A DNA stretch of 64,000 nt. Origin: Klebsormidium nitens. Taxonomy: Eukaryota > Plantae > Klebsormidiophyceae. Position 1 is the stretch's first letter; each line of letters starts with the position of its first letter. Where the stretch lies: assembly GCA_000708835.1 (NCBI GenBank), contig DF236953.1, positions 420,990 to 484,989 on the forward strand. Reading direction: 5' to 3'. The position numbers were made by a program, and so were the translations under genes. The notes beneath the pieces were generated by a model. That model had not been told where the DNA came from. It saw only the letters and a list, made by a program, of their open reading frames with translations, and ran no database searches. Positions 15,701 to 51,767 of this stretch are shown piece after piece.

Positions 15701-18700
15701 CGACGCTTCTGATCTTTGATATCCGCTCGCAACAGAAAAAGAGTTTTTGCTGCAGGGCTACGTCGCTAGCTCGACGCCACGTGGCGTCTTCGTCCGCTTC
15801 CTCGGACGCCTCACGGGCATGGCGCCCGTCTCGCAGCTGTCCGACTCGTTCGTCAGCGACCCGGCGGGCCTGTTCACACAGGGTCAGTCAGTGCGCGCGA
15901 GGGTGGTGGAAATGAACGAAAACGTGGGCCGGTTCACGCTAACCACAAAGCAGTCGCTGTGCTTTTCGCCGGACGCGACGTACTTGGAGAGCTACTTTGC
16001 ATCTGAGCAGAAGGTGCGGACGCACTTCTTCGATCACACGTTTAATTTTCGACTTGGGATTTGTGTACTATAACTCTTTCTTTTCTACTTCATTTTCGTG
16101 GACGTGGTGTGTCGACCGAGATTTCGTAGGGATTCTTTGGTAGGGAGTGGGTACTGCCGTGGGTTCTCGTGGAGATCAACCGTTAGTGAACATTTAGCGT
16201 GCCGAGAAGTCGTTACGGTTTAGAAAGCAAACGAGTTTGTTTTGGGAGATGCGAGGCTATCTGCCTCTCTGTATAGAGTCAATCTGAAAACCGCTTTTCA
16301 AGGTTCGAACTTTAGCTCATGTGGAGCGCATTTCCTTCCGGTCTCTCACGCACGTTGTGGATTCGTGGAATGGTTCTAAGGGTTTGAACCCTCACCTCTT
16401 TTCTTTGGTCTTGGCTGTCAGTTCAGCAGCACTGTTTTTGGATGTCACTAACAAGGTATCAACACTTTGCTTGATGGGAGGCGGTACAACAAACTCAAGA
16501 AGATCTTTTATAGTTTCGGGAAAAAAGGTCCTTCAATAAGTCGTATAAGGAACTTTGGCCCCGACCGCTCTTCCCCTCTTGCACGTTGGACGAACTGAAC
16601 CCCCTTTTGCTGCAGATTGCCAAGCTCCGGAGTGAGCAGGAGGGCACCTCGCTCGACTGGCTGTCGGCGTACCCGATCGGAGCGGTCGTAAGCGGATCGA
16701 TCCAGGAGAAGAAGGATTACGGCTACATCGTCAGCCTGCCGGAGCACGAGGACATTGTGGGCTTCATCACCTACCACCAAGGTGAGAACGGACTCTGAAA
16801 AGATTGCAAAGCTTTTTTCTTAAATCTTCAGATTTTATCTCTTTCCGCACTTCTTGTAGAATCTGCTACTGGGCCTCGTTGCGATTCATCCAGAGAGGTT
16901 TTGCGCTGGCGTTTCCGGATTGTTCCACAAAAAGTCGGTATGCGTTCTCGTAACCAGGACCCCTACGCATCCTGCGATTTGTCAAAAGGGTTCGCTGCGA
17001 GTTCACAAGATGATTGGTATTGCCAGTGGCAACGGCCAAAAGGCAGGACGTGCATTCCGTTGTCTGAAGTATGGTGCAGAACTGTTACCAATCTTTGGCT
17101 GCTCGGCGCCAAACGAGGTTTGGTCCAAATCTCATTCTTCGCACCTCAGCCGCTAATTCATACGATCTAACGAGCTTAGGTCTCCGACTCCGTCAACTGT
17201 TGGTTTGTAGGATCTTTCAGATGGCCTTGCAGATTGTTCCCCACGTACAAGGTCCGGGCTGTTCAAATTCAATGAGACTTCCAAGTTTGTCCTCCCGATC
17301 TCCTGATTCTTCCAGCGTTTTTGACCATGGCTTGTGTTCTATCTCTCCAGCGGGCGGCGAACTAGAGGTGGGCGCGGACGTCCACGCGCGCGTCTTGGAC
17401 GTGGGCGTCGCGGACGGCATCGTAGACCTATCGGTGCGGCAAGAGGTCTTGGGTGAGGAAGCCACGGGTAAAAAGAAGAAGAAGGCCAAGGTAAGGGGAG
17501 CACGAGACCTGGAAAGTTGTGTGTTTGGGACTTTGTTGAGCATTTGGGAGTGGGTTTGAGGACTTCTGCACTTTGATTAAGATCGACCCAATGCTTGGTA
17601 AAGGTTTGGGACCGTTGGAATGGCTTGCTGTCGATTTCTTCCAGCCATCCCAAGCAACTTGCCGAGGTTTTTTTTTATCCGCATCCTGCACGCCTGCAAA
17701 CCCTGCGAACATATTGGCCCCCAGGGATCACCGTACCCGGTGCTTTCAAAGAACCTTGACAAACCCCAAAACTTTGGCTGACTTGCAAACGGCTGCGAAC
17801 CCCGTGTAAACCTCCTGCGAACCGAACCCAAATCTCAAGCGCCGTGAGACACGGACGCCTAGAGTCTTGGCCGCCCAAGTCATGACCTTGAAGCCATCTG
17901 TCTGAAGCAACCCCGCACTTCTGTGAATAGCTTCAGAAGTCATTGAAGCCGCTACAGTTTCGTTGAGTGTATTTTGACCGGTAAACATGTGGCCCAGGGC
18001 CCTCATTTGCTAAGTCTTGAAAGTACAACCTGTATGGACCTCTGTGAATCTGCTAAGCCGATTGGAAAACCACGGGATTCTCGAAGTTTTTTAGAGCGGC
18101 CTTTGGTTCTCCTGCCGTTGGTCAGGTACGGTGTCAAGTTCTTTGAGCTTGAGGAGCTACTGAAATCTTGCAGCACCTTAACACGCTTTCCGTGTTGCTC
18201 CAGAAGCCCGCCGCCCCTCCGCTCCCCGACCTGAATCAGAAGGTCGAGGCGGTGGTGCAGCTCGTGAAGGACGACTACCTGGTGTTCACTCTGCCCCAGT
18301 CGGGCAACGCGGTCGCTTATGCAGCGACCAAGGACTACAACTGGCAAGCCGTGGACCCGCACAAGGCGTTCAAGCCCGGCCAAAAGTGAGCGCTTAGAGA
18401 CGTGCCTTTTGAGTCGAAGTTCGCTGTGATTCTTGGTGCCGCCTTCTTCTTGACTCCTTCTCCTTGAATGGAAGGCATTAGGCAGGGTTCGATGTAGGGC
18501 CATAAGACCCAAGTTGTCTAATTTATGTTGCCCCGTGCATTCGAATACTACGAGCTTCTGGAATAAGTGTCCTCATGGACGGAACACGTGCATCCTTGTG
18601 CAAGACCTTCCAAATGCTCGCTGACGTCACATAGCGCTTGGCCGACGTCATTCACGCTGCCACGGGCTGATGGGGTCCGTCCAGCGACTGCCGGGGACCC

Positions 18701-21700
18701 CTCACGACCGCCTCCAGTCGCTGGTACCCTTCTAATTTCTACCCGACTTTGCTGACGTCACATATACCCTCGACTGACGTCACTTACTCTGCCACAGGCT
18801 GCTGGGGTCCGTCCAACGGCTGCCAGAGACCCCCCACGACCGCCTCCTGTTGCTGCTGCCCTTCGGAACGGACTCTCTGTACGCGTCCAAGTCTGGGGAC
18901 GGTTCGGCGAAGAAGGGGACCAAGCCGCCGCGGATCGAGGTCGGGACTGTCGTGACGGGGAGGGTGACGTCAGTGAAGGCACTGCAGCTGAACGTGGAAC
19001 TAGACCGGGGGCTCATGGGCAGGGTGCACATTACGGAGGTAAGCCATCTGAATGTCAACTTTCCGGGTACTTGATCCATCCCAGTTTCGTCCTTCTCATT
19101 CTGCTTCTTCATGGAAGTGGGATGTTGTTCGAAGGACAGTGGGTCTGCATCCAAAAGCACGCAGTGTCAGAAATTGTTTCTGGGCGTCCAAACAAAGTAC
19201 GTTGCAGCCCAAGGAACTCCGATGATGGACGGGGAGCCTGCTCAGGGAGGCGGACACCTAGACCTTAAATGCGCGACACAGAAACTTCAATCATGACTAT
19301 CTACAAGCTTTGAAGAGATCGACCCTTGTCGAAACGTTTGTCGGACACGTCATTAAAACTCCTTGATTAGTACAACCCGTCGAAGCGTCTTAGACCACTG
19401 TTAGCGCGTGGCAACCTGACCACTTTTTTAGGGTCTTCGGGTTGTAGGAATCTAGGTTTCTTTTGAGACGTTGTGGTTAGATGCCCTTTGTCACGAGGAA
19501 TTGGCCTTGCAAATACTTGGGAGATGGGGCTAACGAGTAAGGGGCATGTTGCAGTTGTGAGCGGTGGAGGGTTCGAGCAACTTCTTAACAATGTCCTGAT
19601 TTACTGCCCGCTCATCAAGTGGACATTCTTGTCATAGCATTCGCACTCGTTTGTGGGGAGTACCGGAGACCAAGTTCTTCTTGTCGCAGCTTCATTCGAA
19701 TAGCCATCTGAAAGTTTCATTGATTCCGGATTTTCAAACCCCTTTGTTGATTATTGCGGACTCCTTCAGTAGCTTGTGTGTTCGACGACTACTTGACATC
19801 CAATCTGCGGTTCTGCAGGTAACTGACGACTACCCTGGCGACGGTGTCAACCCACTCATGGCCTTCAAGCCCAAGCAGGAGATCAGCGCCCGCGTCGTTG
19901 GTTACGGCCAGACCCCCGCCGCCGACGCTCGGCGCTCTTTCTTGGAGCTCTCCCTCCGACCTTCGGAGCTCCAAAACCCCAAATGGGATGAGATTCGGAC
20001 CGCGATTGCGGATGGTAGCACGCCGGACGCCCACGTCACGGACGCCCGTCTGGCGCCTTTGACCGTGGATTCGGTGGAAGTGGGGAAAGAGATCGTGGGT
20101 TATGTGGAGGAGATTGGCGCGCATACCGCGAGTCTCGGGCTCTCGACGCAGGTGCGCGGGCGCTTGCACGTAGTCGAGAGCGCGTCGGAGCCGTCCGAGA
20201 TGCGGAGATTCAAGCAGGGATTTAAGCTGGGCGACCCGGTACAGTGTCGGGTCGTTGCTGCGGACGCCAAAACGCACGCCGTGGAGCTTAGCTGCAAGAG
20301 CGGGAAGAAACTAGAGGTGGGAGATATTGTCGCCGGGCGGGTGAGCAAGGTACTGCCCGGTATAAAGGGCCTGCTCGTCCAGGTGGGCATTCACACCGTG
20401 GGACACGTGGCAGTCACGGAGCTGGGCGACCGGTGGCGGGAGCGGCCCCTAGAGGGCTTCGCGACGGGGCAGTTTGTGCGGTGCGCGGTGCTCGACGTGA
20501 CGGAGAACGCGAGCGGTAACGGTAATGGGGCCGGAAGCGGTCATGCGATCGAGCTTTCACTGAGGGAGAAGCTTGGAGGGTGCGGGGGAGAGGAGGCGAA
20601 GGCGGTTCGTGGAGAGAAAGCGGGAGAGGGCGTGGAAGTCCCGAGAGTCGCGGCTGTGGAGGACTTGTCTCCTGGTCAGGAAGTCTGGGTAAGGACGTGA
20701 ATCTTTCGGCAAGCCCATTTTTTCATCGAAAGCAACGGGCGTTTGCTTGCCTTGCTCTAGGCCGATGATTGGATAAACTAGTGGCGGATGAACTTTTCTT
20801 GGAGGATGTATGAATCTCGAAGACATGTAGAACCTTAGTACGGGGTCTGCTTTGCTACCAATGGTTTGCAGAATGCTGGGTCGCCGTGCCGACGAAGATA
20901 TCACTGCGCTCCCTTTCCCTCCTGCACTATCCCTTTCTTTCTCTTCCTACCCTTTCGTACGGCTTGTACAACCTGAGTTTACACATAGATATCGTTTGTA
21001 TGTAGGGAAGGAGATGTGTCCTTTATCAGTGCTGACGTCCACTTCTTTGCTCAACTCCTCACGCAGGGCTACGTCAAGAGCTGTTCCCCCAAGGGCTGCT
21101 TCGTTATGTTGGGCCCCAAAATCGACGCCCGCATCCTGATGGCCAACCTCTCGACCACCTTCATCGACGACCCCGCCAAGGAGTTTCCCCCGGGTACCCT
21201 GGTCCATGGCTGGTACGTACCTTGTTCTCTCATTACCGCTCTTACTTGGGTGTGGTTGCAGTGCTCCACCGAGCCTCTTCGCGTTTGCGTTACCCGCACA
21301 CTTCAATCACTGGAAGCACCGAGGTATCTGGACGTCGCGTCTTCATTCAAGGTTCTGGGGCATAAGTACCCCTCTCGGCTTCTTGAGCATGCTGGTAGTG
21401 TATCGTGGTCCTCCAACAAACAGACTAGAGTCGTATCTTACGATCTGAAACTGACTATAGCTCATTTTTTTTGGTCAACTTATAAAGGTTTTAGAGTCGC
21501 GTCGAGCTAAATAACGGGTTCCCGCTTTTGGAACGACCGGATGCCAACTATCTGCGTCCGCCTATTCCCTGGTCGTCGCAGCTGAATGCATCCGCAGAGT
21601 GAACGAGGTGTCTAAAAGCCCTTGGGTTGTTTCTCCACATCCAAGTGTTACGTACCATCACGACATCCCTAAGTCTGTCGAAAATCAGGCTTCTGTTGCA

Positions 21701-31200: not shown

Positions 31201-34200
31201 GGTAGAAGTCTGTTAATTGATGTAACTTCCCGTTGAAGTCCTGGTCCAGACAGAGTCCCCATTTTACGTGACCAGGCAACCACGTTTACCGTTTCGCTGT
31301 CGAATAAAGAGCTGAAGGCCGGATGATTCAAGCAGCAAAACTTTCCAAAACATGCTTCTCCGGAGCATATTGCAAGGCGACCTGCTTCAAGGCTTCAGAA
31401 TTCCGGGATTCCAGGGTTCTAAACCTGGATGGGAGACAGAATCCGTTACCTCATAAGCGTGCAATTCGGCAAAAACTGGTGACTTTGTGTAAATGACAGG
31501 TCAAAAGGTGATCATTCGGAGATTGAAAGTTTGCTACGAGGAATCTACCAAGATACATCCAGAGCGAGGCACCAGCTTGAATAAAGCAACGGCCACAAAT
31601 GATGTCACGGTGCTGACATCACTGCTGGCCCTTTCCAGACCAGATACACGACCAACTGCCTCCGTTAAAGGGTATAGGCACTTTCGTAGCCGGTTGCGTC
31701 CCACGCTGCAAGTTTTGTTATACTTCCCTGCTCAAAAGCGGTGATGAAAAGCGAGACCTTTCCATCCATCTCACCAGCGGGACGTCTTCTTGAGGAAGGT
31801 TAAGCTCCTCCCGCAGGCTCGTCCGATTCGCGTCCTTTCCGGACGGGTCCTCTGCGGAGTACGACGTCGAGAGCGCAGGATCCCGTTCCGGGTTCCACAC
31901 CATGTCGTTCAGCCCGCTGAGGATGCCCACTATTTTGGCCCTGGGACAACGATTCGAAGGGTCTAAAAGAAGTCTGAAGTATAAGTCCTTACAGCAGTCG
32001 TGAACGAGCTCAGCGTACGTGTCGAGGCCGTGCCAGTCTATTTTCGAAGGCCTGCAGCTCAATGACGCATCTAGTAGACTTGGATATCAGAGACCAACTA
32101 GGCCAGTTTTCTGCGACAATCAGCCGCAACTGGAAAGGACACTTCGCACCGATTTGCTGTGTGCATTCAGCAGCTTGGCGCCCGGGCTGCTGGCAGATAA
32201 TCTTCCCGAAAGCAAGCCGCACAATCTACAACCTGAGTCACCAGCGCTCCGCTTCGCTTGACATTGCGGACTTTCAATACTCCTTCGCATGCTAGGGGAA
32301 ATGTTACCCCTGCAACAAATGCAGGGTTTCGACAACCAGCACTGATTTACGTGGGAAGAGCGGTCACTTACTCGTGTTGTTGCAAGGTCGGCTCCATCCC
32401 GTAGCCCAGGTTGGTCTTGACGTCGCTAGCATACGTTTGTGAAGCGGTTGTGACCTTGTTCGAGTACACGATGCCACCCTGCGCAAGAGACAAGACTGAC
32501 TCAGAGGGCCTCATGTTCGAGCTATCGCACCTTTCATGGTTGCGAGGTGCAGAGAGCAAACAGCGGACAGAGTGTTTGAATAGAGTAGTAAGCTTGACAA
32601 CAGCTTTGGCAAGCAACAAAGGGACAGCATTTTGATGCATACTGGCGTCTTCAACGGAAGAAAAAAATGCTCAAAATTTCCCAGAAAACTGCCAGCAGAT
32701 CTTCCTCTCGAACCCAAGGGTATCAGGAGAGACGCCCGAGATACACATCAGGAAACCGGGTAGAATGTGTCATCGGCACAGCCCCGGACCGACTGCTCTC
32801 GTAGAGATGTTCGATGCCATCTTAGCCCGGTCTGAACCGTTCTGACCCATACGAGACTCCAAGAGTAGCACAATGCTCCGAAGGCCACGGCCTGGCTGGC
32901 GTACAGAAGACTTACCTTCAGCAGATTTATCATGCTCGGGTCGAGGTTGTCTTGCAACCGATCTGGCCGGTTGAGCTGGGAGTGATCCAGCCCGCAGAGG
33001 GCCAACTTTTCTGGGGGTGCCGTGCACTGAGAACAGACACGAAAGTAACCCGATGTTAGAAGCAGCGGCGCTTCGGCCAGACAAAAGGGTAGCTCAAAGC
33101 TTGCGAAGGAGCAAGCGACTCATTGACAGCAGGACGCATTTGCATCTTTCTTTCGTGGGGATGTTCGGCGCACTTCAGGAAGCTGTGTGCAAAGGACTTT
33201 CTTTGCGGAACATTAATTTGCGGGGGTCTCAGAGGCGTGCTAAAGAGCATGCCTTCCCCTTTTCCGTGCAGACAGAACGGATGAAAGGAGAAAGCGGAAT
33301 CCCAGCGGGTCACTTTCGATGACACTCCTCAGTTACAACCTTTCAAATCAACGGTCCGAAAAGGTCTTTCCGGCGGAGTTGGCCGTCGATTTCCTGGGGG
33401 CTGGCGGAGGTTGCCCGGAAGTCCAATGTTCTCCCTCCATCCTTTCTGACACTCCTCCGAGGAATATATTAAAGTACTCATGAAGTCAGAAACAAGAGAA
33501 GTCAGCAATCAATCGGAACATGAACATCTCAGGAAGCGGGCGGTAGCGCAGACCTGGTACTTGAAGTCGTGGCAGGTGAACATGATGCGCGTGTCTTGCA
33601 AGCCCGCGTTGTAGAAGATGTCCCAAAAGAGCGGCGCGATGGCAGCCGTCTGCCAGTTGTGCAAATGCAGCACGTCCGGCTGCTTGCCCACCTTCTGCAC
33701 GTACTCCAACGCCGCGCGACTGAAGTAGGTGAACCTGCGGAGTGAAGACTTTCATTGATGAGTACTTTGGTTCATTGCGGAACAAGGGCTAGCTTGGTTG
33801 GTTGTTGGTTACTGATGGGTTCACCGTTATCTAGCGTTTTTCAGGCTGCTTGCCCACCTTCTGCACGCACTCCAGTGTAGCGCGACTGTAAGTAGGTGAA
33901 CCTGCGGAGTGAAGGCTTTCATTGATCAGCACTTTGACTCCTTGTGGAAGCAAGAAACTCCATTGGTTGATTGTTGGTTACTATTTGTTATCCACTAGTT
34001 AGCGTTTTTTAGGCTGCGTGCCCACCTTCTGCACGTATTCCAGCGCCGCGAGGCTGAAGTACGTGGATCTGCATAGTCCGGATAGTCCTTACTTGAGTAC
34101 TTGGTCAGTTCATTTCGTATCCTTAACGGTAAATGATCGAGCTATTACCAATTTTCTGCACATAGGTACACCAGGGCCGCGCGCTGAAGCACGGGAACCT

Positions 34201-40862: not shown

Positions 40863-40866
40863 CGCG
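40863..40866. repeat. Left target-site duplication CGCG (right copy 51326-51329)
   Basis: tatatg-CGCG-[TGTC...GACA]-CGCG-gccgca. Confidence 0.8.
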
Positions 40867-40958
40867 TGTCGCGATCCTACCTGAGGATCTCTCTCTAAAC
40901 CCAGCTGCGCCAGGCACCATGAAGCATGTCAACGCTATACACCTAACTCTCCTACTCT
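40867..40958 (-). repeat. Repeat A, outer copy (92 bp)
   Basis: Identical to 41317-41408. Confidence 0.95.
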
Positions 40959-41314
40959 GAATGATTGCATCAATCACAAATCACCTAAACCACATGCACC
41001 ATACACATAAGCGCAGTCTGCTTATGCGGAGACTCTCTGCTGGCCGTCATGCAGCATGACGAGGAGACAATGGTTGCTGATCAAAGTCGCCTTCAATATG
41101 CCTTAGACCGAACATAGAGAGAATGAGCTACAATCAGCTCATTCTCTTACCTAAATGTTCTGTCCGGCCATCAACCTTCTGCTTAAGTGCTTTGTACGGT
41201 AATCATCATGCTCATCAATGCATTACCGGACTCACTCTAGCTCTAGTTACGGCTGACCCTAACGTAATGACCGGGTTGCGAGATAACCCGGTCGCGACAC
41301 AATCTGGCGTGACA
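40958..41314 (-). repeat. Repeat B, 3' copy (357 bp, LTR-like, TG...CA)
   Basis: Matches 50969-51325 except for two adjacent substitutions (ca versus tt). Confidence 0.95.
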
Positions 41315-41320
41315 GCTGTC
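41311..41320. other. Perfect palindrome GACAGCTGTC joining the B end and A start (internal end-to-end junction)
   Basis: Right-terminus sequence (...GTGACA) + GC + left-terminus sequence (TGTCGCG...). Confidence 0.9.
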
Positions 41321-41408
41321 GCGATCCTACCTGAGGATCTCTCTCTAAACCCAGCTGCGCCAGGCACCATGAAGCATGTCAACGCTATACACCTAACTCT
41401 CCTACTCT
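41317..41408 (-). repeat. Repeat A, inner copy (92 bp)
   Basis: Identical to 40867-40958. Confidence 0.95.
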
Positions 41409-41416
41409 CCCCTCCT
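41409..41416 (-). other. Putative polypurine tract (sense AGGAGGGG, purine run continuing into A)
   Basis: Lies 32 nt after the pol stop and directly abuts the inner repeat A. Confidence 0.65.
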
Positions 41417-41448
41417 GAACCGTGCACCCCCATCTTTCTAAACACGGT

Positions 41449-44400
41449 TCACTCCGTCATTCCGACCGGACCCACTAACGCCTGCGCCGTTTGACACTTG
41501 GGGCAGAACCAGTCGCCCTCAGGAACCGCCGCCAGCGGAGGGACCAGGCACCTCGTGTGCCACCCGGCCCCACACCCATCACACAGCAACATGGAGGCTT
41601 CGTCATCAGCCCTGCGACAGCGCGTGCACGCAAAGTCGGCTGCGGGGCGCGCCAGGCGCGCATCCTGTCGATCGTCGATGTCGATCCGATGACACGGGGC
41701 ACATCTCTCCATGTGCACCCGCACCGTCCGCGCGTCCGCCCCCTCCAGTTCCAACACACCCCCCGTCCTCACGTGCTTGACCCGCAGGATCCGTGGTCCC
41801 GCCCGGCTGTCCAGGGTGTTGAGCATCTCTCTCTGCAAATACACGTAATCGCCCACCGCATACCTGATGATTTGCGGCTTCCAGGCACCACTGCGGGTCT
41901 TGGCGTACCGCAGCGTGTCCCGGTGTTGGGCAATTTGCAGGTTGCCCATGGCCATTGGGACCAACCGCCGGAACAGTGCAGCCCGTTCTGCCACCAACGC
42001 GCGCAGCCTGTCCGGACGGTCAATGTCCAGGGGTTCCTCCAGCGCCGCGCGCACCGTCCCTGGCAAAACCGGCTCCCGTCCGAAGAGCAGCACGTACGGG
42101 GAGAACCCACCCAGTGACGCCTGCGCGCTGAACCGGTATCCCATGGTGACCCAAGGCAGGTAGACGTCCCATTGCTCCGCGGCGTGCCCAAGGCACCACT
42201 TCCGCAGCGCACCTTTGACCACCCCGACTATCCGCTCGCTGAGGCCATTTGCCTGAGGGTGGTGGGACGAGGTCGACCGGTGGTCGATGTGAGACCGGTC
42301 GAGTAGCTCCTGGAAAGCGCCCCCAAACTCCCCTCCTCTGTCCGTCACTATCTCCGCACAAGCTCCGAACACCGTAAGGACTTCCCGGGTGAATGCCTCG
42401 GCCACCGTCTGCGCTTCTTTGTCAGCCGTGGGCACGAACACCACGTGCTTGCTGAAATGCTCAACCATGACGAGCACAAACTGGTTTCCCCGGCTTGACT
42501 TGGGCAGCGGCCCCGCAGAATCTAGCCCCCACCGGTAGAACAGTCCCTTAATCGGGAGGGGCTGCAACACAGGATGCACTGCGTTGAAGGCTGCCCTCAC
42601 CCGATCGCACGCCTCACACTGACGCACCACCCGCTGAACGTCCGCCGCCAGACCCACCCACCAGTAGTGAGGGCTTAGCAGGGACACCGTCTTCTTGACC
42701 CCGAAGTGTCCGCATTTCTCATGCACATCCCGAACTAGGGCCTCTCTCTCTGCCGGCCTTGGGACCACGCGCACCCCACCGGCTGCCTCACGGTGCACCA
42801 GGTGGTCCCGTTTCCACTCAAAGCTGCGCGCTCGGTGCTGTGCCCGATCTCGCTCCCCCGAGGAGCTCCTCTCTGGCGCGCGCCCCGTCTGCAACAGGGC
42901 CAGGACTGCGCCGTCCGCCCACACGTCCACCGCCGGCCGCACAACCACCCGTCCGGTTTTGCTTTCCCCAGGCGAGGCTGCCGGGGCCCAAGCTAGCGCT
43001 GCTGCAGCTGACCAGCAGGGCGCCAGTGTCTCCCCCAAGTCCCCCTCCTGCCGGACGCCCGCCGTGTCTTCGTCTGATTTCTGTGGGTACCGACTCAAGC
43101 AGTCCATTTCGTTCTCGTCCCCGGGGGTGTAATCGACCACCATGTCAAACTCGCTCAGCATCATCGCCCACCGCGCAAGCTTACCGGTCAGCTTGTTGTT
43201 GGTCAGGATCCACTTGAGCGGCCGGTGGTCACTCTCCAAAGTGAACCGCTCCCCGTACAAGTAGTTCCTCCACAGCCGCACGAAGTAGACCGCCGCGAGT
43301 AACTCCCCCTCGAAACTGCTGTACCGCGACTCCGCCGGGTTGCAGCTGCGGCTCCCGTAAGCAATCACCCGGTCCACCCCCTGCTCGTCGGCCTGCAACA
43401 GGACTCCGCCCACCCCCTTCTTGCTCCAGTCGCAGCGCACCTTGAAGCTCCGTCCTCTCACCGGCAGCGCCAACACAGGCTCGTTCTGCAGCGCCTTTTT
43501 GAGCGCCAGGAACGCCCCCTCCTGCTCTTCACCCCAGCGCCACTGCACTTCCTTCTTTGTCAACTCGTTGAGCGGCCCCTGCACCCGGCTGCACTCCGGA
43601 ATGAACCTCCGGTAGTAGTTGACCACCCCGTTGAACGCCTTGACCGACGTAACGTCTGTGGGCCGTGGCAGGGCCTCAATAGCCGCCACTTTGGCGACCA
43701 CTGGCGACACCTTGCCCGGGCGCAGCCACATGCCGAGGTACTCAACCGAGTCGGCCCCGAAACAGCACTTGTCGGGGTGGCACTTGAGCCCTGCCTCCTT
43801 CAGCCGGTCCAACACCCGCTGCACCAGCGCCATGTGCTCCTCCAGCGTCTCCCCTCCAGCCACCAAAACGTCGTCGATGAAGCTCCGCGCGAACCCCTCC
43901 AATCCCCTCAGCGTTCTGTCGATTGCCCGCTGAAACCACGCGCTGGCGTTGCGCGCCCCGAACGGACACCGCTTCCAGCAGTACAGCTTGGTGGACCCCC
44001 AGAACGCCAGCTTGCGCCTGTCCTCTTTTCTCACCACCAGCTGGTGAAACGCCCCCCTGATATCAATCGTGGAGTAGTACTTTGCGTGCCCCAGCGCCTC
44101 CAGGACCTCCTCCGGCAGTGGCATTGGGTAGCGATCCTGCGCTGTCTCCGCATTGACCCTGCGCAGGTCCGTGCAAAAGCGGTCTAGCTTCCAATTCCCC
44201 TCCGGGTCCTTCTTCGCCGCTAGCACTGAGTTTGCCGCGAAGTCACTGTCCGTTTCCTCAATGATCCCCGCCTCCTCCAACTCTCTGCAGCGCTCATCTA
44301 TCAACTCCCACTCCTTCACGCTGTGCTTTCTGCGCCGTTCGAAAATGGGCCGCTCCGTCTTTAACGTCAACTCCACCTCAAACAACTTAAACTCTCCGAT

Positions 44401-46179
44401 CTCCCCCAAGCTATTGGCAAACACATCACGATTTGCCTCCGCCACTGACGCCGCAAACCCCTGCTCCTCGGGCGTCAGCTGACTCCCGACCAACCACCGC
44501 CGGCACTTCCCGGCTACGGGCCCCCCCGGTTCTTCCACTTTTCCTGACCGGCCCTGCCCTGCCGGCTGTCCGACCCCATCCTGCCCCGGCCGGATCTGTC
44601 CTGCCGCACCGGCCGCCTTTGCGCCGTCTCCTGCCCTGGGCGCGCGCGCTGGCGCGCACCCCGGTGCCTCGGCTGCCCCCACACCGTCTCCTGCCCTGGG
44701 CACACCGTCTTCTGCCCTGGGCGCGCGCGCTGGCGCGCGCCCGACTGCTCCGGCTGCCCTGGGCGCGCGCGCTGGCGCGCACCCCGCTGCCCCGGCTGCC
44801 TTCTGCGCCTCCCCTCCCTGGCTGCCGTTGTCCGTAGGGCCATCCGACTTCCCTCCCAACGGCAAAGCTGCCGCCGCTGGTGACGCACCCGCCGCCGCTG
44901 CGCAGGCAGCCAGGAGCCACATGACCGTGTTAAGGTCCATGGCTTGGCCCAGCAGCTCGCGTCGGGTGGATTCGGACAGACCAGGCGCCGCCGAGAATCC
45001 GCGGGGAAACCCCATGGCTAGTTCGCGTTCGTCGGCTGTGGGCTCCCCGTAGGTTAGCTCGCTTCCTTGTGTGACCTGAATCACTCCGCCCCTTGTGTGC
45101 GAAAACGCATGTGAACCGTTGTAGCTCACGAAAGTGGGCAGCGCGCGCCTTGGCTCCCCCGGCACTTCCACTTTGGCCCACGGGGCTTGTCCGGAGCCCC
45201 TAGGAATCTGCGCGCGCCGCCCGGGCCCAAGGATGTGGTGCACGAACAGCCCAGGTGGGCGGACCTGAGCGGCGATCGCCGCACGCAGAAGAGCAGGTGC
45301 ACTGAGGTTGGTCCACCACGCCCGTAGGCGGTGCGCCCGCGATCCCAACTGGGCGGCGTCCAACACCACTTCGGGCCCCAACAGACTGCGTACCTCAGCA
45401 AAATGATCCCTCACCCGAGGACGTCGGTCGTGTCCAGCCGCCACGTGCTCGACGACGTAGGCCAACGGGTGCCCCCACTTTCGGTGTGACCTCTGCAGGT
45501 GATGCAGCACCCGTACCAGGTCTTCAACCAGCCCCGACCTCTCGTCTTCCAGACCCCGCCCGAGCCCCGCTGCGCTGTTTCCTTGACACGGCCACCCTGC
45601 CACGACCACGTCGAGCGGGCCGAGTGCCAGCAGGTGGTCCTCGCTGACCAGCTGTATGTCCTGGGGCAGGCGGTGATGCAGCTGCGAACACGCCCGCTCC
45701 TCCATCCTGCCCGGAAACTCCAGGCTGAGCTGCGCGCACGACCACCGGTGCAACTCTCGCGCCGCCCCCCGCTTCTCGCAGGCCATTACCTCACCAATGT
45801 TGTATCCGAGCCGCACCAACGCCTGGGTCGCTGTTCCCACGCCTGCAAACAGCTCCAGCACCCGCAAGGGCCGGTCTCGTGGCAACGGCTGGACAACCGA
45901 CCAGTCCAACGGCTGCAGCCCCTTGAGCCGGCTTAACTGGACCTTGCGTGGCGGCTCAACAGCTGGCCGGCCCGCCGCCAACGCGGCTCGAACCGCTCGC
46001 TCCGCCCCTGTCTTAACGTTTAGCGGGGGACCCCGCGGCCACCTACTCACTGTGCCCTGCCGCGCCCCTTGTCCACTTCCCCTTTGTTCCCTGTTACTCC
46101 CGCCAGACCGACCCTCCCAGCCGGCCTCTTGTTGCACCGGGCGTGGGCCAACCGCCGTCTCCCCGCCCGGCGCCTGGCG
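41449..46179 (-). CDS. Pol: DNMT3-like C5 methyltransferase, RT, RNase H, integrase, PHD finger
   Basis: DNMT motifs at about 44900-45870. RT: RFCTDLRRVN, STIDIRGAFHQ, CPFGARNASAWFQR, FIDD (43870-43881). RNase H: DWSKKGVGGVL, EGELLAA, SDHRPL. Integrase: HHCC, then D (WGLDS), D (TDRGGEF) and E (ANGLSER), with 34 residues between the second D and E. PHD at 41494-41628. The frame opens directly after the TGA at 46180-46182; first GTG at 46137. Confidence 0.95.
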   Translation of the reverse strand, partial: RQAPGGETAVGPRPVQQEAGWEGRSGGSNREQRGSGQGARQGTVSRWPRGPPLNVKTGAERAVRAALAAGRPAVEPPRKVQLSRLKGLQPLDWSVVQPLPRDRPLRVLELFAGVGTATQALVRLGYNIGEVMACEKRGAARELHRWSCAQLSLEFPGRMEERACSQLHHRLPQDIQLVSEDHLLALGPLDVVVAGWPCQGNSAAGLGRGLEDERSGLVEDLVRVLHHLQRSHRKWGHPLAYVVEHVAAGHDRRPRVRDHFAEVRSLLGPEVVLDAAQLGSRAHRLRAWWTNLSAPALLRAAIAAQVRPPGLFVHHILGPGRRAQIPRGSGQAPWAKVEVPGEPRRALPTFVSYNGSHAFSHTRGGVIQVTQGSELTYGEPTADERELAMGFPRGFSAAPGLSESTRRELLGQAMDLNTVMWLLAACAAAAGASPAAAALPLGGKSDGPTDNGSQGGEAQKAAGAAGCAPARAPRAAGAVGRAPARAPRAEDGVPRAGDGVGAAEAPGCAPARAPRAGDGAKAAGAAGQIRPGQDGVGQPAGQGRSGKVEEPGGPVAGKCRRWLVGSQLTPEEQGFAASVAEANRDVFANSLGEIGEFKLFEVELTLKTERPIFERRRKHSVKEWELIDERCRELEEAGIIEETDSDFAANSVLAAKKDPEGNWKLDRFCTDLRRVNAETAQDRYPMPLPEEVLEALGHAKYYSTIDIRGAFHQLVVRKEDRRKLAFWGSTKLYCWKRCPFGARNASAWFQRAIDRTLRGLEGFARSFIDDVLVAGGETLEEHMALVQRVLDRLKEAGLKCHPDKCCFGADSVEYLGMWLRPGKVSPVVAKVAAIEALPRPTDVTSVKAFNGVVNYYRRFIPECSRVQGPLNELTKKEVQWRWGEEQEGAFLALKKALQNEPVLALPVRGRSFKVRCDWSKKGVGGVLLQADEQGVDRVIAYGSRSCNPAESRYSSFEGELLAAVYFVRLWRNYLYGERFTLESDHRPLKWILTNNKLTGKLARWAMMLSEFDMVVDYTPGDENEMDCLSRYPQKSDEDTAGVRQEGDLGETLAPCWSAAAALAWAPAASPGESKTGRVVVRPAVDVWADGAVLALLQTGRAPERSSSGERDRAQHRARSFEWKRDHLVHREAAGGVRVVPRPAEREALVRDVHEKCGHFGVKKTVSLLSPHYWWVGLAADVQRVVRQCEACDRVRAAFNAVHPVLQPLPIKGLFYRWGLDSAGPLPKSSRGNQFVLVMVEHFSKHVVFVPTADKEAQTVAEAFTREVLTVFGACAEIVTDRGGEFGGAFQELLDRSHIDHRSTSSHHPQANGLSERIVGVVKGALRKWCLGHAAEQWDVYLPWVTMGYRFSAQASLGGFSPYVLLFGREPVLPGTVRAALEEPLDIDRPDRLRALVAERAALFRRLVPMAMGNLQIAQHRDTLRYAKTRSGAWKPQIIRYAVGDYVYLQREMLNTLDSRAGPRILRVKHVRTGGVLELEGADARTVRVHMERCAPCHRIDIDDRQDARLARPAADFACTRCRRADDEASMLLCDGCGAGWHTRCLVPPLAAVPEGDWFCPKCQTAQALVGPVGMTE
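41494..41628 (-). other. PHD finger at the integrase C-terminus
   Basis: CTRCRRADDEASMLLCDGCGAGWHTRCLVPPLAAVPEGDWFCPKC (C4HC3 with conserved W). Confidence 0.92.
44900..45870 (-). other. DNMT3-like cytosine-5 methyltransferase domain within Pol
   Basis: Motif I LELFAGVG, II ACEK, IV VAGWPCQGNS, VI VVEHV, VIII AHRLRAWWTNL, IX ERELAMGFPRGFS, X RRELLGQAM. Confidence 0.9.
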
Positions 46180-49100
46180 TCAATGTAAGCCACTACAGGC
46201 CAGCGCGACACCCGCGGTACTGACGGGTGAACGGCTGGCCGTCGCGCGCGCAGGACGCGTGCCTGCCGCCTGCCGCAGGCGCATGGGTATGCTCGCTACG
46301 TGCTCCCCTTGCGCCCGCCAGTCGACCCGGTACGTGCCCCGCTCGGCCCACCGGTCGATGCTGAGGCCTATCGGGTAAGCTGCCCGCGTACCAATGAGCA
46401 GATCGTAGCCGGTCGACTCGGTGACGGCCAAGCGCTCGTACAGCGTTAGCTCCGCGGGAGTGCCGGCGTTCAGGACGATGGGCACCGGGTCTCGGGTGAG
46501 CCCCTTCCCCAAGGGCTCGATCTGCCCGAGGGCCGTTTGCACCCGGCAAGATGCCGCGGTGCTGTCCAACGGCAGCCCGAGCTGGTCCGCCAAGCGCGCT
46601 CCTGCCATCGAATAGAAACTGCCCCCGTCGATCAACACACGCAGCGGCGCCTTCAGTCCGGCCACCGTCATTACTTTGACCGCCCCATCTCGGTTGTCTA
46701 CCCAGTCCGGGGTGCCGACCCATTGGTTGCGCTCAGCGGGGGGAACCTTTGGCAGCGCCTCAGCGAAGGCCGCCAGCGCGTGGGTCTCCTCCCAGGCCTT
46801 TTCCGTCCCCCCATGCCCCGCCGCGCTCGAAGTCGTCTCACCGTCCGTGTTCAACTTCCCCTTTCCCTTACGGGACACCGTCTCCCATCCGCGCTCCTTC
46901 CTCGTCTTCGGAGCCGGCCCGTTCTGCGCGCGCAGCGCTGCCGCTGAGTCAACGCCAGCCACCCGCGCCTCCTCGGCCAGCAATTCGAGCGCCACCTGCT
47001 CATCCGAATTTTCCGGTCCCGACGGGCTTTGCTGCCGGCGCGCGCGATCTGCTCTTGCCTGGGCCATCCACGAACTTTCAGGGTCTGTGCCCGAGTCGTC
47101 CGCCGAGCTTTGCCTTGCGTTGCCCTTCCCTGTTTTCACCACCTCAGCCGTTGGTGTCTGCTCGGTCGAGCTAACACCTTCCCCTGGGTTTGCACCCGTT
47201 TCGACTGTCCCTTCAACCACGACCGCCCCGCGCTGGGTCACTCGCCCTGCGCTTCCTACCCCAATCTGTCCGGCTTGGCTCAACTGTTCTGTTCCGGGCC
47301 GGTCCGTGCCGGCTGTGGCCACCGCCCTGCGCATCACCTCCCTCGGGTCGAGCTGCGGCCGCGGCGCGCTGGCGCCACCTCCCGTCATCTCCACAACCTG
47401 CTGCAACGTCATCCCTGCGCGCTCTGCCAACCCAAGAAACGCCGCCACGTCCATGGTGACCTGCCCCACCAGGACCGTCTCCCCGACAGCCCTCAGCTGT
47501 TCCCCCGGGGAATCCGTCATCTCGGCCGGGGCCACTTCATCGACTGGCCCGTTGAAGGACGTTGCTGCACCCCTGCGCGCTCCACCTGGTGACACCACCT
47601 CCTCCGCACTCTGACGCTTCCCCTCCGGTCTGACGCCAAACCCTTGTGGCAGGCGGTGCAAGCCTTGTGCAGCCACCTCTCGGCCTTGGTCCGGGAGCTT
47701 CGCCATCCGCTCTTTAAGCGCCGCTTTGTCCCTGCGGGCCCGCAACTGCCTCAGTGCTTCAGCCGGAGCCTTCCTCTCCAGCGCTGCGGTGCCCACGGGC
47801 TGCCCCGTGGCTGGCCCGACCACCTGTCTCGGGCGCGTGCCCGCGCGCGCCTGTTTTCTGGGCCTGGACTGTGGCCCGGACAGCCGGGTCACTTTCTCCA
47901 CAGCCCCCGCGCCTGCCGCCGCGCGCGTCGCCACTGCTCCGAGCTCCAGCGGAGTGGGACACCACGCCCCACCTCCCTCTACCACCAGGGCGGCAGCCCC
48001 CAACCCGTATTCCTCCTCGTCCCAACTGGCCGCGTCATCGTCCTCCAGACTCAGCGCCGCCGCCGCTTGAGCCGCCGCCTTCCACGCCCTGAACTCCTCC
48101 ACTTCCGCCACGCTGAGCCCAACCGCTGCCAACTCCGCCCCTCTGACGCTTCCTGCCGGAACCGCGACTGCCGCCGGCGCCACATGTCGCTTTGGACACT
48201 GAAACGAGAGATGCGCCGGGTCACCGCACACGAAGCAGATCCGTTGCCGCCCTACGCCCCGGCCCGGACCCGACCTCACGGCTCCCCCGGCCGAGGACCC
48301 CCGACCTGCACCCCCGCCTCCCCTCTGCGGGCACTGGTTCCTGTAGTGTCCGATCTCACCGCAAGTGTGGCACGCACCTGACCCGGCCGACCCAGCAGCC
48401 ACCGCTGTTGCCACCGCCGCGTGTGGCGCCTCAGGGACAGCTGCGTGCGCGGCCGGAGCGCGCCCGCCCCACCTCGGCCGGGCCGCCTCCACTGTCCTGG
48501 GCGTCATCTCCCTGGCGATCCTAAGCCTGGACGCCATCTCGTTCACTCGGACGGCCGCATCGTACGCGTTGTCCAGCGTGTAGCCACCGTCCCCGCTCGT
48601 GGCCGCCGCCAGCGCCTGCGTGTTGACCGCGTCCCCAAGCCTCTTGTCCAGGGCCGCCACGAACTTGGTGACGAGCTCAGGGTCGGTCAGTGGCTTCTTA
48701 AGGTCAGTCGCCAACCCCTGCAACCTGAACAGCAGCTCCGGCAACTCTTCCCCTGCCTCTCGCCGAAAGTTGACCCACTCCTGCGCCTTCCCTTCGTTTC
48801 TCTCACCAAAGTGGCGCTTGAGGCTCGTCAGCAGGTGCTTCACCGGCTCGTCCTTGGTGTTGCACTCCTTGTAGGTGCGCAAGTGCGCCTCTTTTGCCGG
48901 GTTGTCCATATGCTCCCCCAGGTGTATGCAGAACCGCTTTTTAAACTCAGCCCCCTCAACCGGCCTGCCCAAGTCCTTTTGCAGCTTCGTGAACCGGTCA
49001 AGGATGCTGCCCTCGACCTGGAGTTCGAACTGCTCTAGCGTGAGCCCCTCGTTCTTCCTCCCCGAGAAACGTTGCTTCCCCTCACCAACCGCCGCCATCT

Positions 49101-49296
49101 CTGCCCAATCTTCTTCCTCCCACCAGAACACTGCCTGACCCGCCGCCGCTGGCCTGTTCACAACAACCCCACTGCTCGCGCCTGACGCGGTGTCCTCGCT
49201 CCCCTCACCCGCCGCAACCCGGCTGTACTCAGTTGCAGCTGACACCTCAAAGATGGAGCCGTGGATTGTGTGCTGCGCACGCGTCCCCACTGGCAT
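46180..49296 (-). CDS. Gag-protease polyprotein
   Basis: Gag-like helical region, two CCHC knuckles (CHTCGEIGHYRNQC 48331-48372; CFVCGDPAHLSFQC 48196-48237), aspartic protease LRVLIDGGS (D at 46627-46629) and YDLLIGT. The true start could instead be MAAV at about 49098. Confidence 0.9.
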   Translation of the reverse strand: MPVGTRAQHTIHGSIFEVSAATEYSRVAAGEGSEDTASGASSGVVVNRPAAAGQAVFWWEEEDWAEMAAVGEGKQRFSGRKNEGLTLEQFELQVEGSILDRFTKLQKDLGRPVEGAEFKKRFCIHLGEHMDNPAKEAHLRTYKECNTKDEPVKHLLTSLKRHFGERNEGKAQEWVNFRREAGEELPELLFRLQGLATDLKKPLTDPELVTKFVAALDKRLGDAVNTQALAAATSGDGGYTLDNAYDAAVRVNEMASRLRIAREMTPRTVEAARPRWGGRAPAAHAAVPEAPHAAVATAVAAGSAGSGACHTCGEIGHYRNQCPQRGGGGAGRGSSAGGAVRSGPGRGVGRQRICFVCGDPAHLSFQCPKRHVAPAAVAVPAGSVRGAELAAVGLSVAEVEEFRAWKAAAQAAAALSLEDDDAASWDEEEYGLGAAALVVEGGGAWCPTPLELGAVATRAAAGAGAVEKVTRLSGPQSRPRKQARAGTRPRQVVGPATGQPVGTAALERKAPAEALRQLRARRDKAALKERMAKLPDQGREVAAQGLHRLPQGFGVRPEGKRQSAEEVVSPGGARRGAATSFNGPVDEVAPAEMTDSPGEQLRAVGETVLVGQVTMDVAAFLGLAERAGMTLQQVVEMTGGGASAPRPQLDPREVMRRAVATAGTDRPGTEQLSQAGQIGVGSAGRVTQRGAVVVEGTVETGANPGEGVSSTEQTPTAEVVKTGKGNARQSSADDSGTDPESSWMAQARADRARRQQSPSGPENSDEQVALELLAEEARVAGVDSAAALRAQNGPAPKTRKERGWETVSRKGKGKLNTDGETTSSAAGHGGTEKAWEETHALAAFAEALPKVPPAERNQWVGTPDWVDNRDGAVKVMTVAGLKAPLRVLIDGGSFYSMAGARLADQLGLPLDSTAASCRVQTALGQIEPLGKGLTRDPVPIVLNAGTPAELTLYERLAVTESTGYDLLIGTRAAYPIGLSIDRWAERGTYRVDWRAQGEHVASIPMRLRQAAGTRPARATASRSPVSTAGVALACSGLH

Positions 49297-49305
49297 TTGC
49301 AGCCT

Positions 49306-50391
49306 CTAATCCAGTTCACTCATGCCTCCTGCTGCCGGCTCTGCACCCACTCGCTCACCCGTCTGCTCCCCCGAGCGGGCCCGCCTCTCCTGCTTCTTGC
49401 GCCGGCGCTTCTCTCGCTTGGATGCTGCCCGCTGCTCCTCCGCTTCCCCTCTCACTGGCCCTGCTTCCTCCTGGCTGCCCCGCTCCGCACACCGCTGGGG
49501 CACTATCTCCACCTCCGCCACCCGCTTTGTCAGCTCCCGCCACCAAGCTGCCTTCGCCTCCTGCTCCTCCCTTTCCTTCTCTCGCCTCGCGTGCTCCACC
49601 CGCGCCGCCACCAGCGCCTCCGCCTCTCTCCAAACTGCCACCCTTGCCTGCAGCGGCTGGAAGCGCTCACAAATGGCGCAGCTAACAGGGCACCCCAACT
49701 TGACCGCGGGGAGATGTTGTGATGGGTCCGGAACCTGACCGATGCAGGCGGCTCCAGGCGCGTTACTCGCCACAAACGCCGCGTACACCTTCCCGCGCGG
49801 ATACTCCTTGTGCTGCTGCTCGAACGCGCGCCAATCCTGGATGAACTCCTGCGCCAAGCGAATTGACCTGGCTACCGCCGGATCAGCGTCCGCCTTGCGC
49901 TGCAACTCCCGCCTGAGCCGCTCCACCTCCTGCGCTTCACGCCTGCTGCCCTGCGGCGTGCTGGACTCTTGCGCAAACGCCGCGTCCTCCTGCCTGAGCT
50001 TGAGTCCCTCCCAGGCGGCTTTCCCGAGCTCCTCGGCCGCCTGCTGCTGGCGCGCCCACTCGGTGGTCCTGGTTACTTCTGCCCCCGCCGCCTCCGCCGC
50101 CTTCTTATCACAGATGACACAGCGCGTCCCACACGCACTGCGCTGCACCGGCCAGTGGTCTTCCTCCCTTGCCTCAATTCCCAGCAGAGCCGCCCCTGAC
50201 TGATTGTTAGCTACGTAGGCAGCCCAACCGCTACTTTCTTCTGAATGTACCCCCACGATCTGCTCTGTCACAAGCAGCTGCCACCCCTGGATGAACTCAT
50301 GCGCTTTCCAAAACTCACGCTCGCGCTCCTTTCCTCCTAACTCACACAGACGCCTCAAGAGCTCCTGGATGTCAGGCGCTCCTGGCGCCAT
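49306..50391 (-). CDS. Accessory ORF0 of the retrotransposon, 361 aa, unknown function, internally duplicated putative Zn-binding domain
   Basis: ATG start, two EFIQxW...AAxVAxNxxGAA...H-x7-C-x3-C-x2-C units, charged helical segments and a basic C-terminal patch. Confidence 0.7.
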   Translation of the reverse strand: MAPGAPDIQELLRRLCELGGKEREREFWKAHEFIQGWQLLVTEQIVGVHSEESSGWAAYVANNQSGAALLGIEAREEDHWPVQRSACGTRCVICDKKAAEAAGAEVTRTTEWARQQQAAEELGKAAWEGLKLRQEDAAFAQESSTPQGSRREAQEVERLRRELQRKADADPAVARSIRLAQEFIQDWRAFEQQHKEYPRGKVYAAFVASNAPGAACIGQVPDPSQHLPAVKLGCPVSCAICERFQPLQARVAVWREAEALVAARVEHARREKEREEQEAKAAWWRELTKRVAEVEIVPQRCAERGSQEEAGPVRGEAEEQRAASKREKRRRKKQERRARSGEQTGERVGAEPAAGGMSELD

Positions 50392-50956
50392 GCTCCATGC
50401 GCAACAGCTGGTGAACCGCTAAACTGATGGTGAACAGTCGCCTGCAGCGCATGGGAGACATGGCTCAGCCAACGCATTCCAGCACGCCTCCCACCCGAAA
50501 CCACGCCAGGACCTGGCCCGCTGCTTGGCACGCTACCCTTCGCCCCGCACACACACTCAACTCTACGCCCCCCACCGCCCGCAGCTGTGGGCAGACCCCT
50601 GCACCACTCACCTCAGCCCTGAACCTTTGACCACGAGCAGGCACTATGAGCGGATTCTCCTTCTACCAGGTCCACAAAACCCTGTCAATAACTACACCAG
50701 GTCTGCTCAGACCTCACCCTCGCTGACCCTAAGCAACTGAAGCTCTCAGTGCTTCGCAGCAGCCCTCAGTCAGGGCGTCAGACAATACAGTCAGCCCATG
50801 CCCCCAAGCAAGCACGCAGCCTTCACTCGGCTAACTCAGCCGCACATTCAACCCAACTCACCACTGCACATAGGCAGCCTCGCCAGCTGTCCACCGCGGT
50901 CCACTCTGGTGCGCCCCCGCCTAGATCACTGGCGGGTCCACTCTTAACACGTTGTG

Positions 50957-50968
50957 ATTCTCTCTATG
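50957..50968 (-). other. Putative self-priming primer-binding site (sense CATAGAGAGAAT)
   Basis: Directly abuts the 5' repeat B, has no tRNA-type TGG start, and is complementary to 51124-51135 inside B. Confidence 0.7.
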
Positions 50969-51325
50969 TGAATGATTGCATCAATCATTAATCACCTAAA
51001 CCACATGCACCATACACATAAGCGCAGTCTGCTTATGCGGAGACTCTCTGCTGGCCGTCATGCAGCATGACGAGGAGACAATGGTTGCTGATCAAAGTCG
51101 CCTTCAATATGCCTTAGACCGAACATAGAGAGAATGAGCTACAATCAGCTCATTCTCTTACCTAAATGTTCTGTCCGGCCATCAACCTTCTGCTTAAGTG
51201 CTTTGTACGGTAATCATCATGCTCATCAATGCATTACCGGACTCACTCTAGCTCTAGTTACGGCTGACCCTAACGTAATGACCGGGTTGCGAGATAACCC
51301 GGTCGCGACACAATCTGGCGTGACA
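50969..51325 (-). repeat. Repeat B, 5' copy (357 bp; functional 5' LTR-like segment)
   Basis: TG...CA; matches 40958-41314 at 355 of 357 positions. Confidence 0.95.
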
Positions 51326-51767
51326 CGCGGCCGCACTGGGATGTCGATCATGCGGCATGCATGTACATGAGCGGCTATTTGCACACGTGCATGTCGACAT
51401 GCATGTTAGTGTGCAACCTTCAGTGACGCTGGTTCACTACCATATACAGCAACTTTGCATCAAGCATTGAGTTCTTCGAATCGCACCAACTTTTGACAAT
51501 TATAAATATGTCCCAATTGGTGCCGATTCAGCTGAAGTGCATGCATCGTTCAAACATCTGAAGAGCCGGACTTGCATCCTTGGGCCGTGCCAGCTGCTCG
51601 TCACATTCTTGTTAGAAACTAGGTCAAGTACACTCCTAAAAGAATCAACGGGCAGGCCTCAGCATTAAGAGATCAACCCTGCGCAACGTCCCACTCTCGA
51701 ATTCCGGCGGGGGCTTGCGCTTTCCTGCAGGCCTCGACAAATGCTAGTCGTCTACATGCATTAGAGC

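Follow-up and report, generated by a model that had tools for sequence, protein, structure and literature searches.

A gypsy-type element with split repeats

The window, meaning the whole stretch of 64,000 nt analyzed here, contains a retroelement of 10.46 kb at positions 40867–51325. The sense strand of this element is the minus strand, and both the G+C content and the GC skew suggest that its genes lie on that strand. Its internal region has a G+C content of 64–68%, compared with approximately 50–55% in the surroundings. Elsewhere in the window, an SRA1 domain and an RRP5-type S1 domain occur in host-type ORFs (1128–2669 on the minus strand and 19651–20697 on the plus strand). The stretch at 33678–34077, outside of the element, contains three direct repeats, each about 166–168 nt long, that have diverged from one another (68–85% identical).

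The coding region of the element is a single reading frame on the minus strand (41449–50391, read from 50391 to 41449) with two in-frame stops, which may either be read through or reflect damage, and no frameshift. It encodes an unknown N-terminal part, a zinc-knuckle gag, a protease, and pol. Along this frame, the domains found (all on the minus strand) are a zf-CCHC zinc knuckle of the gag/nucleocapsid (48325–48375, E = 4e-07), an aspartyl protease with a weak match (46516–46668, E = 0.004, which misses the curated cut-off), a C5 cytosine DNA methyltransferase at the N-terminus of pol (45493–45864, E = 9e-08), a reverse transcriptase (RVT_1, 43726–44208, E = 2e-24), an RNase H-like domain (RT_RNaseH/RT_RNaseH_2, 43147–43536, E = 1e-31), an integrase with an H2C2 zinc domain and a DDE core (42256–42756, H2C2 E = 9e-16), and a C-terminal PHD finger (41494–41628, E = 3e-10), for which KDM5-type PHD fingers are among the matching solved structures. 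The position of the methyltransferase varies between lineages: it lies ahead of the reverse transcriptase in the window copy versus after RNase H in two related loci (L008 and L115, see below). A 47-nt direct repeat with 96% identity (44631–44677 and 44754–44800) is also found in pol upstream of the reverse transcriptase.

For the integrase core, the Pfam rve score of 30.3 bits is just under the cut-off of 32.6. Among solved structures, the integrase matches Ty3 Gag-Pol (7q5b, E = 5e-26) and the PFV integrase (E = 4.5e-24), and the catalytic residues D, D, and E are visible in the alignment with these solved relatives. A search of all ORFs on both strands of the window found no tyrosine recombinase.

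Repeat finding and BLAST revealed two pairs of direct repeats in the element. Block A is 92 nt long and 100% identical between 40867–40958 and 41317–41408, and block B is 356 nt long and 99.4% identical between 40959–41314 and 50970–51325. On the plus strand, these blocks are ordered as [A B] GC [A – 9.56 kb – B], with a 10-bp palindrome at the boundary of two repeat blocks. Read in the sense direction, with B referred to as X and A as Y, the layout is X(356)-internal-Y(92)-GC-X-Y, and all copies are on the minus strand. The upstream copy X1 (50970–51325) starts the element with TGTC. Downstream of the internal region are the internal copy Y2 (41317–41408), the GC dinucleotide, the downstream copy X2 (40959–41314), which also starts with TGTC, and the terminal copy Y3 (40867–40958), which ends with GACA. 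The whole unit is flanked by a 4-bp target duplication, CGCG, at 51326–51329 on the 5' side and at 40863–40866 on the 3' side in the sense orientation.

The element is a Ty3/gypsy retrotransposon of the KnitGypsy-Dnmt3 group of Klebsormidium. The protease, reverse transcriptase, RNase H, and integrase occur in the order expected for Ty3/gypsy elements together with a zinc-knuckle gag (the protease match being weak). The DDE integrase with its HHCC zinc domain likewise belongs to this type, as do the TG...CA termini with a short target-site duplication, which are found in the window and in three related loci (L004, L006, and L112). Two identical flanking LTRs are not present, as the upstream end consists of X only and the downstream end of Y-GC-X-Y. 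KnitGypsy-Dnmt3 was described as having Gypsy domains and a Dnmt3-type C5 methyltransferase within pol, and a figure legend in the same paper likens the order of its repeats, A-coding-B-A-B, to that of DIRS elements (de Mendoza et al., 2018; PMC5890265). The window element has both the methyltransferase in the pol ORF and the A-coding-B-A-B repeats. Its closest proteins are hypothetical proteins of Klebsormidium nitens, with 65–76% identity overall and up to 95% in the integrase region. The window copy represents a related KnitGypsy-Dnmt3 subfamily, the sequence of which is not identical to the published one, and the X of another locus (L002) is 90% identical to the window X. More broadly, the element is part of a green-algal clade of gypsy elements with a PHD-finger integrase.

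Neither the published family nor the split-repeat layout appeared in a first-pass annotation of the window, and both were identified here. The family is already in print, and the odd repeat layout is mentioned in passing remarks, to judge from the excerpts of the two papers concerned (PMC5890265; PMC9940879). In the excerpts of PMC5890265 used here, neither the palindrome nor its lost spacer is described, nor are the target duplication, the priming sites, or a mechanism. New in this work are the 4-bp duplication, the conserved palindrome as a putative att site, the placement of the priming sites, and the interpretation of the inserted copy as a cDNA permutation.

The internal palindrome and its conservation

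The palindrome GACAGCTGTC (GACA-GC-TGTC) occurs at 41311–41320 and has a single exact copy in the 64,000-nt window. It comprises the half-site at the end of Y, the GC spacer (41315–41316), and the half-site at the start of X, and is located exactly between the repeat blocks. The outer termini of the element match the two halves of this palindrome, with the spacer missing from both: the boundary is CG|TGTC on the left and GACA|CG on the right, and the flanking CG at both ends is part of the CGCG duplication. By itself, a 10-mer palindrome is unremarkable. Its exact position between the repeats and its recurrence in other loci raise it above chance.

Related loci were retrieved through their pol proteins. 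The arrangement X-internal-Y-GC-X-Y, with CA-GC-TG between Y and X, was found in eight of eight independent loci when the window is counted. The others are L003, L004/L005 (one insertion present in two samples and counted once), L008, L112 (Chlamydomonas reinhardtii chromosome 9), L114 (Pleodorina starrii), L115, and L116. The most distant of the relatives bearing this junction is L008, with 38% protein identity. In all eight loci, the spacer is GC, and the half-sites are TGTC/GACA or TGAC/GTCA. The inverted arms of the junction palindromes are 4 to 10 bp long across loci, and the junction of L112 reads GTGACA-GC-TGTCAC. A form without the extra GC-X-Y, namely X-internal-Y, was found in L006, which is complete and has its own target duplication, and in L001 (3' end only). 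For L002, the first five bases of X are mutated and the 3' end lies beyond the contig edge. Two other loci are uninformative: L007 is without repeats, and L113 comes from a Haematococcus region that is nested or duplicated. A metagenome scan with the conserved X start yielded 103 loci, none of which were related and which represent chance matches; the collection scanned did not include the samples of L003–L006.

The target duplications are 4 bp long and all different, namely CGCG in the window, TTCA in L004, CCAA in L006, and TCCG in L112. No locus has GC after an outer end. In L115, no matching duplication was found (3521–3528 versus 16465–16473), and the last base of the terminal Y is G rather than A. 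Recombination between copies or a nested context may explain this anomaly, and a weak reverse transcriptase gene is located just upstream. The metagenome contig of L008 ends at 14925, which is the last base of the terminal Y (...GTCA); such a stop is expected if the assembler met a branch between Y-GC-X and Y followed by flanking DNA. The internal palindrome is intact in every inserted copy, which indicates that not every copy of the putative att site is used.

These results agree with much of what the first-pass annotation had proposed for this junction. The perfect palindrome and the matching termini are present as it described, its assignment to an integrase-type element is borne out by the DDE integrase, and the target duplication with a lost spacer, noted there for one insertion, now extends to four insertions with different duplications. 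Variable spacers or ends in other copies had been named as evidence that would count against the proposal, and the GC spacer and the CA/TG bases are invariant in the eight loci. For the 8-mer TGTCGCGA, which had been suggested as an integrase-binding box at the terminus of A and again 15 nt inside that of B, the positions hold and the conservation of the full box does not. This 8-mer forms the tip of Y on the plus strand (40867–40874 and 41317–41324), and subterminal boxes are present on the minus strand in X2 (41292–41299) and X1 (51303–51310). The four occurrences in the window compare with 2.2 expected, which is not above chance by count alone. Only the core TGTCG(C) is kept, at X positions 16–21 in L003 and L004, and a variant is found in L006.

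Candidate priming sites and the predicted ends of the copy DNA

A polypurine tract (sense CAGGAGGGG; 41409–41417, minus strand) is located directly upstream of Y2. A purine run in this position, directly upstream of the internal Y, is present in nine of nine loci, and Y3 starts at the same base. At the opposite end of the internal region, the first 13 nt after X1 (50957–50969, minus strand) form a primer-binding-like site, which is the exact complement of 51123–51135 (minus strand). The latter is a candidate self-primer segment within X1, with a counterpart in X2 at 41112–41124. Among the related loci, the site after X1 is complementary to a segment about 150–375 nt upstream within X. This complement is exact over 13 nt in L002, as in the window, over 18 nt in L112, over 11 nt in L115, and over 10 nt in L006. 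From family to family, the primer site and the segment change in sequence but remain complementary, and this covariation of exact complements argues for pairing. In L004, the primer site is perfectly complementary over 14 nt to the L003 segment, and the segment is deleted from the X of L004 itself. The pairing performed no better than shuffles in a duplex-energy test, so the case for the primer rests on the exact complements and their covariation. Searches of the window and of seven loci found no tRNA genes.

Self-priming has a precedent in the Tf1/Sushi elements (PMC6317226). Like the window element, these chromoviruses have a complement within the repeat to the site after U5 and no tRNA-type primer site. 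In Tf1/Sushi elements the complement is the 5' end of the transcript, and its counterpart in the window is a candidate for such an end. X also contains a perfect hairpin (51127–51160 and 41116–41149), the stem of which is about 12 bp long. The 3' arm of this hairpin overlaps the candidate self-primer segment, so that this segment has two potential partners, one within the hairpin and the other in the site after X. L112 (X positions 338–372), L003, and L006 also have this three-way arrangement of hairpin, segment, and site.

Given these positions, reverse transcription should produce Y-GC-X, rather than X-Y, as the repeat (U3-R-U5). In such a scheme, U3 would consist of Y, GC, and the first part of X, with the start of Y2 (41317–41408) as the U3 start set by reverse transcription; R would start at the self-primer segment (51123–51135), and U5 would extend to the end of X. 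The placement of the polypurine tract and the primer site fits Ty3/gypsy elements only if the repeat is Y-GC-X, and the primer site appears to be of the self-priming rather than the tRNA type. In L112, a Chlamydomonas poly(A) signal is located between the self-primer segment and the end of X. As judged by the motif and its usual distance to the cleavage site in Chlamydomonas (PMC3439250), this placement is consistent with the repeat scheme but is not strong support, as the motif is common.

A polypurine tract before Y and a primer-like site after X predict that the copy DNA begins with Y and ends with X. The insertion ends, which are the start of X and the end of Y, therefore differ from the predicted copy-DNA ends. 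Under this scheme, the palindrome is best read as a fixed, RNA-inherited putative att site located 92 nt inside U3. The first-pass annotation had taken it for a junction of abutted ends. The positions of the priming sites reject the palindrome as a ligated end-to-end joint and place the true joint elsewhere, namely at the X2/Y3 junction (40958/40959, minus strand), where the U5 end appears to be joined to the U3 start and which would correspond to the circle joint of an ordinary element.

The X|Y joint is imprecise in two loci. In the window, it has no extra bases. In L004, a 322-nt fragment (15082–15403) lies between the downstream X and the terminal Y; it is a copy of part of the internal region of the same element, 10977–11298 (99.4% identical), and its borders have microhomologies of 3 and 5 nt. 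In L112, the terminal Y is 49 nt long and retains, of the 2150-nt Y, 14 nt from the beginning and about 27 nt from the end, and the two X copies are 100% identical despite the internally deleted Y3. Imprecise joints as in these two loci are expected if the joint is remade in each cycle and not copied into RNA. The microhomologies and the internal deletion lean toward polymerase switching or microhomology joining over clean ligation as the way in which the joint may be made.

A possible route of insertion

It appears rather probable that the inserted form of the window copy corresponds to its reverse-transcription product after circular permutation. Minus-strand synthesis would start at the self-primer site directly after X, as in Tf1, and plus-strand synthesis at the polypurine tract directly before Y. 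The half-sites (...CA and TG...) would then be located head to head, 2 bp apart, inside U3, with the ends of the copy DNA elsewhere. The U5 end would first be joined to the U3 start, which would place Y behind the downstream X. This joint may be formed in a two-repeat circle, by transfer of a cut-off Y fragment, or by an end-to-end template switch of the plus strand. Integrase would subsequently nick after each CA, which would give recessed CA-3'OH ends and 2-nt GC 5' overhangs, a cut geometry that had already been put forward correctly in the first-pass annotation. The CA-3'OH ends would be joined to a target staggered by 4 bp, and repair would remove GC and create the duplication. Strand transfer across 4 bp followed by repair would thus explain both the lost GC and the duplication. 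Copies without the X|Y joint would insert as X-internal-Y and, having no 3' R region, should be dead ends. The X-internal-Y copies observed in L006 and L001 could equally have come later from recombination between two Y copies.

Cleavage of the palindrome by integrase is an inference from the layout, and known systems offer parallels for it. Integrase is reported to cut palindromic LTR-LTR junctions of foamy virus and HIV-1 (PMC1905944; PMC1180852; PMC4372172). As in the window element, the two-LTR circle junction of these viruses is a palindrome with CA and TG half-sites, and nicks placed after CA in a staggered manner yield processed ends that are competent for strand transfer. The viral junction is made by ligation of the copy-DNA ends and belongs to a side route. 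In contrast, the window palindrome is predicted to be encoded in U3 and inherited through RNA, with the copy-DNA ends elsewhere, and internal cutting would consequently be obligatory. Minicircles of the IS3 family (IS911) provide another comparison, in which abutted terminal inverted repeats a few bp apart are the substrate of a DDE enzyme. IS911 is a bacterial DNA-only element that moves by copy-out/paste-in without reverse transcription, and its comparison with the window palindrome is one of layout.

The distribution of inserted forms is asymmetric. The mirror form, X-Y-GC-X-internal-Y, was found at none of six upstream ends, whereas the observed form is present at seven downstream ends. 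If a circle carries two palindromes, opening would be expected on either side, and the missing mirror form therefore counts against reading the inserted copy as a permutation. The single structure described for 86 new insertions of a Chlamydomonas relative (PMC9940879) shows a similar asymmetry. Other points that weigh against this reading are the uncut palindrome in all inserted copies, the deviating ends of L115, the segment deleted from the X of L004, the outcome of the duplex-energy test, and the rve score just under its cut-off. A simple two-repeat circle opened at random was rejected as the whole explanation on the same ground. A hypothetical rule, under which integrase would cut a strand at whichever half-site is closer to the 3' end of that strand, would lead to the observed form, and would also give X-internal-Y when the joint is absent.

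Alternatively, the internal junction may be a stored template of both ends, comparable to the internal complementary region or the B1-A2 joint of DIRS-type elements, that is never cut and serves to rebuild termini missing from the transcript. The copy DNA would then be a linear X-internal-Y-GC-X-Y molecule, which integrase would process near its ends in the classical manner. Such a template would account for the single permutation, and it is in line with the intact internal palindrome of all inserted copies and with a repeat layout that is the same as in the DIRS-order split-repeat elements. However, the polypurine tract and the primer-like site are located at the start of Y and the end of X rather than at the palindrome, no priming site is apparent beside the junction, and the start of Y3 coincides with the boundary of the polypurine tract. 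A stored template is thus considered an unlikely explanation.

The comparison with DIRS-order elements also bears on whether the element is itself DIRS-like and was inserted by site-specific recombination at the junction. PAT, kangaroo, Ngaro, VIPER, and SymbioDIRS-Dnmt3 share the split direct layout A1-internal-B1-A2-B2, with both termini side by side internally. Nevertheless, these elements have a tyrosine recombinase, no target duplication, and a junction trinucleotide kept at both flanks. Of these traits, only the split direct repeats are found in the window element, which has a DDE integrase and no tyrosine recombinase ORF on either strand, 4-bp duplications that differ between insertions, and a spacer that is lost from the flanks. 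The flanking trinucleotide is reported for recombinase elements (PMC7192593), which agrees with the expectation in the first-pass annotation that a recombinase would keep the spacer. Insertion by such recombination is very improbable. Even less credible is a one-off rearrangement, such as an assembly error, the capture of a two-LTR circle, or a tandem pair of ordinary X-Y repeats with an element inserted into one of them. The TG...CA ends of X-Y do resemble those of an ordinary LTR, but a single duplication flanks the whole unit, the same layout and junction recur in independent loci, families, assemblies, and host genera, and the layout is also in print (PMC5890265; PMC9940879).

In textbook LTR elements, the two priming sites determine the ends of the linear cDNA that is inserted, and circles count as dead ends. 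If the inserted copy is indeed a permutation, end-joined (circular or tandem) cDNA and an integrase cut at an att palindrome inside U3 would be obligatory for an LTR retrotransposon. In the window copy, 92 nt separate the priming sites from the insertion ends, and in the Chlamydomonas relative the distance is up to 2150 nt. This separation would need an internal cut by integrase and prior joining of the cDNA ends, and the end-joined intermediate would be part of the normal cycle. In addition, the DIRS-type split-repeat layout, so far tied to tyrosine-recombinase elements, would have arisen independently with a DDE integrase and could work with an integrase of the retroviral type. The brief remarks in the two earlier papers would thereby gain a mechanism.

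The scope of this route may extend beyond Klebsormidium. It is possible, at a little short of an even chance, that the whole green-algal clade of gypsy elements with a PHD-finger integrase, from Klebsormidium to Chlamydomonas and Pleodorina, inserts as circular permutations of the cDNA. The permuting clade probably includes a Chlamydomonas family that is spontaneously active in laboratory strains. The PHD-finger Gypsy elements of Chlamydomonas (Gypsy-7a_cRei and L112) likewise have an integrase with a PHD finger and, unlike the window element, are without a methyltransferase. For Gypsy-7a_cRei, 86 new insertions were reported with a single structure described, and the element was noted to have "LTR subparts", with a left LTR that is without the last 8 bp of the right LTR (Craig et al., 2022; PMC9940879). 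This published description, rather than the sequence, suggests that Gypsy-7a_cRei has the same layout with a Y of 8 bp. The length of Y in Chlamydomonas elements would then range from 8 bp to 2150 nt, compared with 92 nt in the window. Within L112 (17606–20334), two additional palindromes of this type are located in the 2150-nt Y, one at 19638 with a GC spacer and one at 19687 with a CC spacer.
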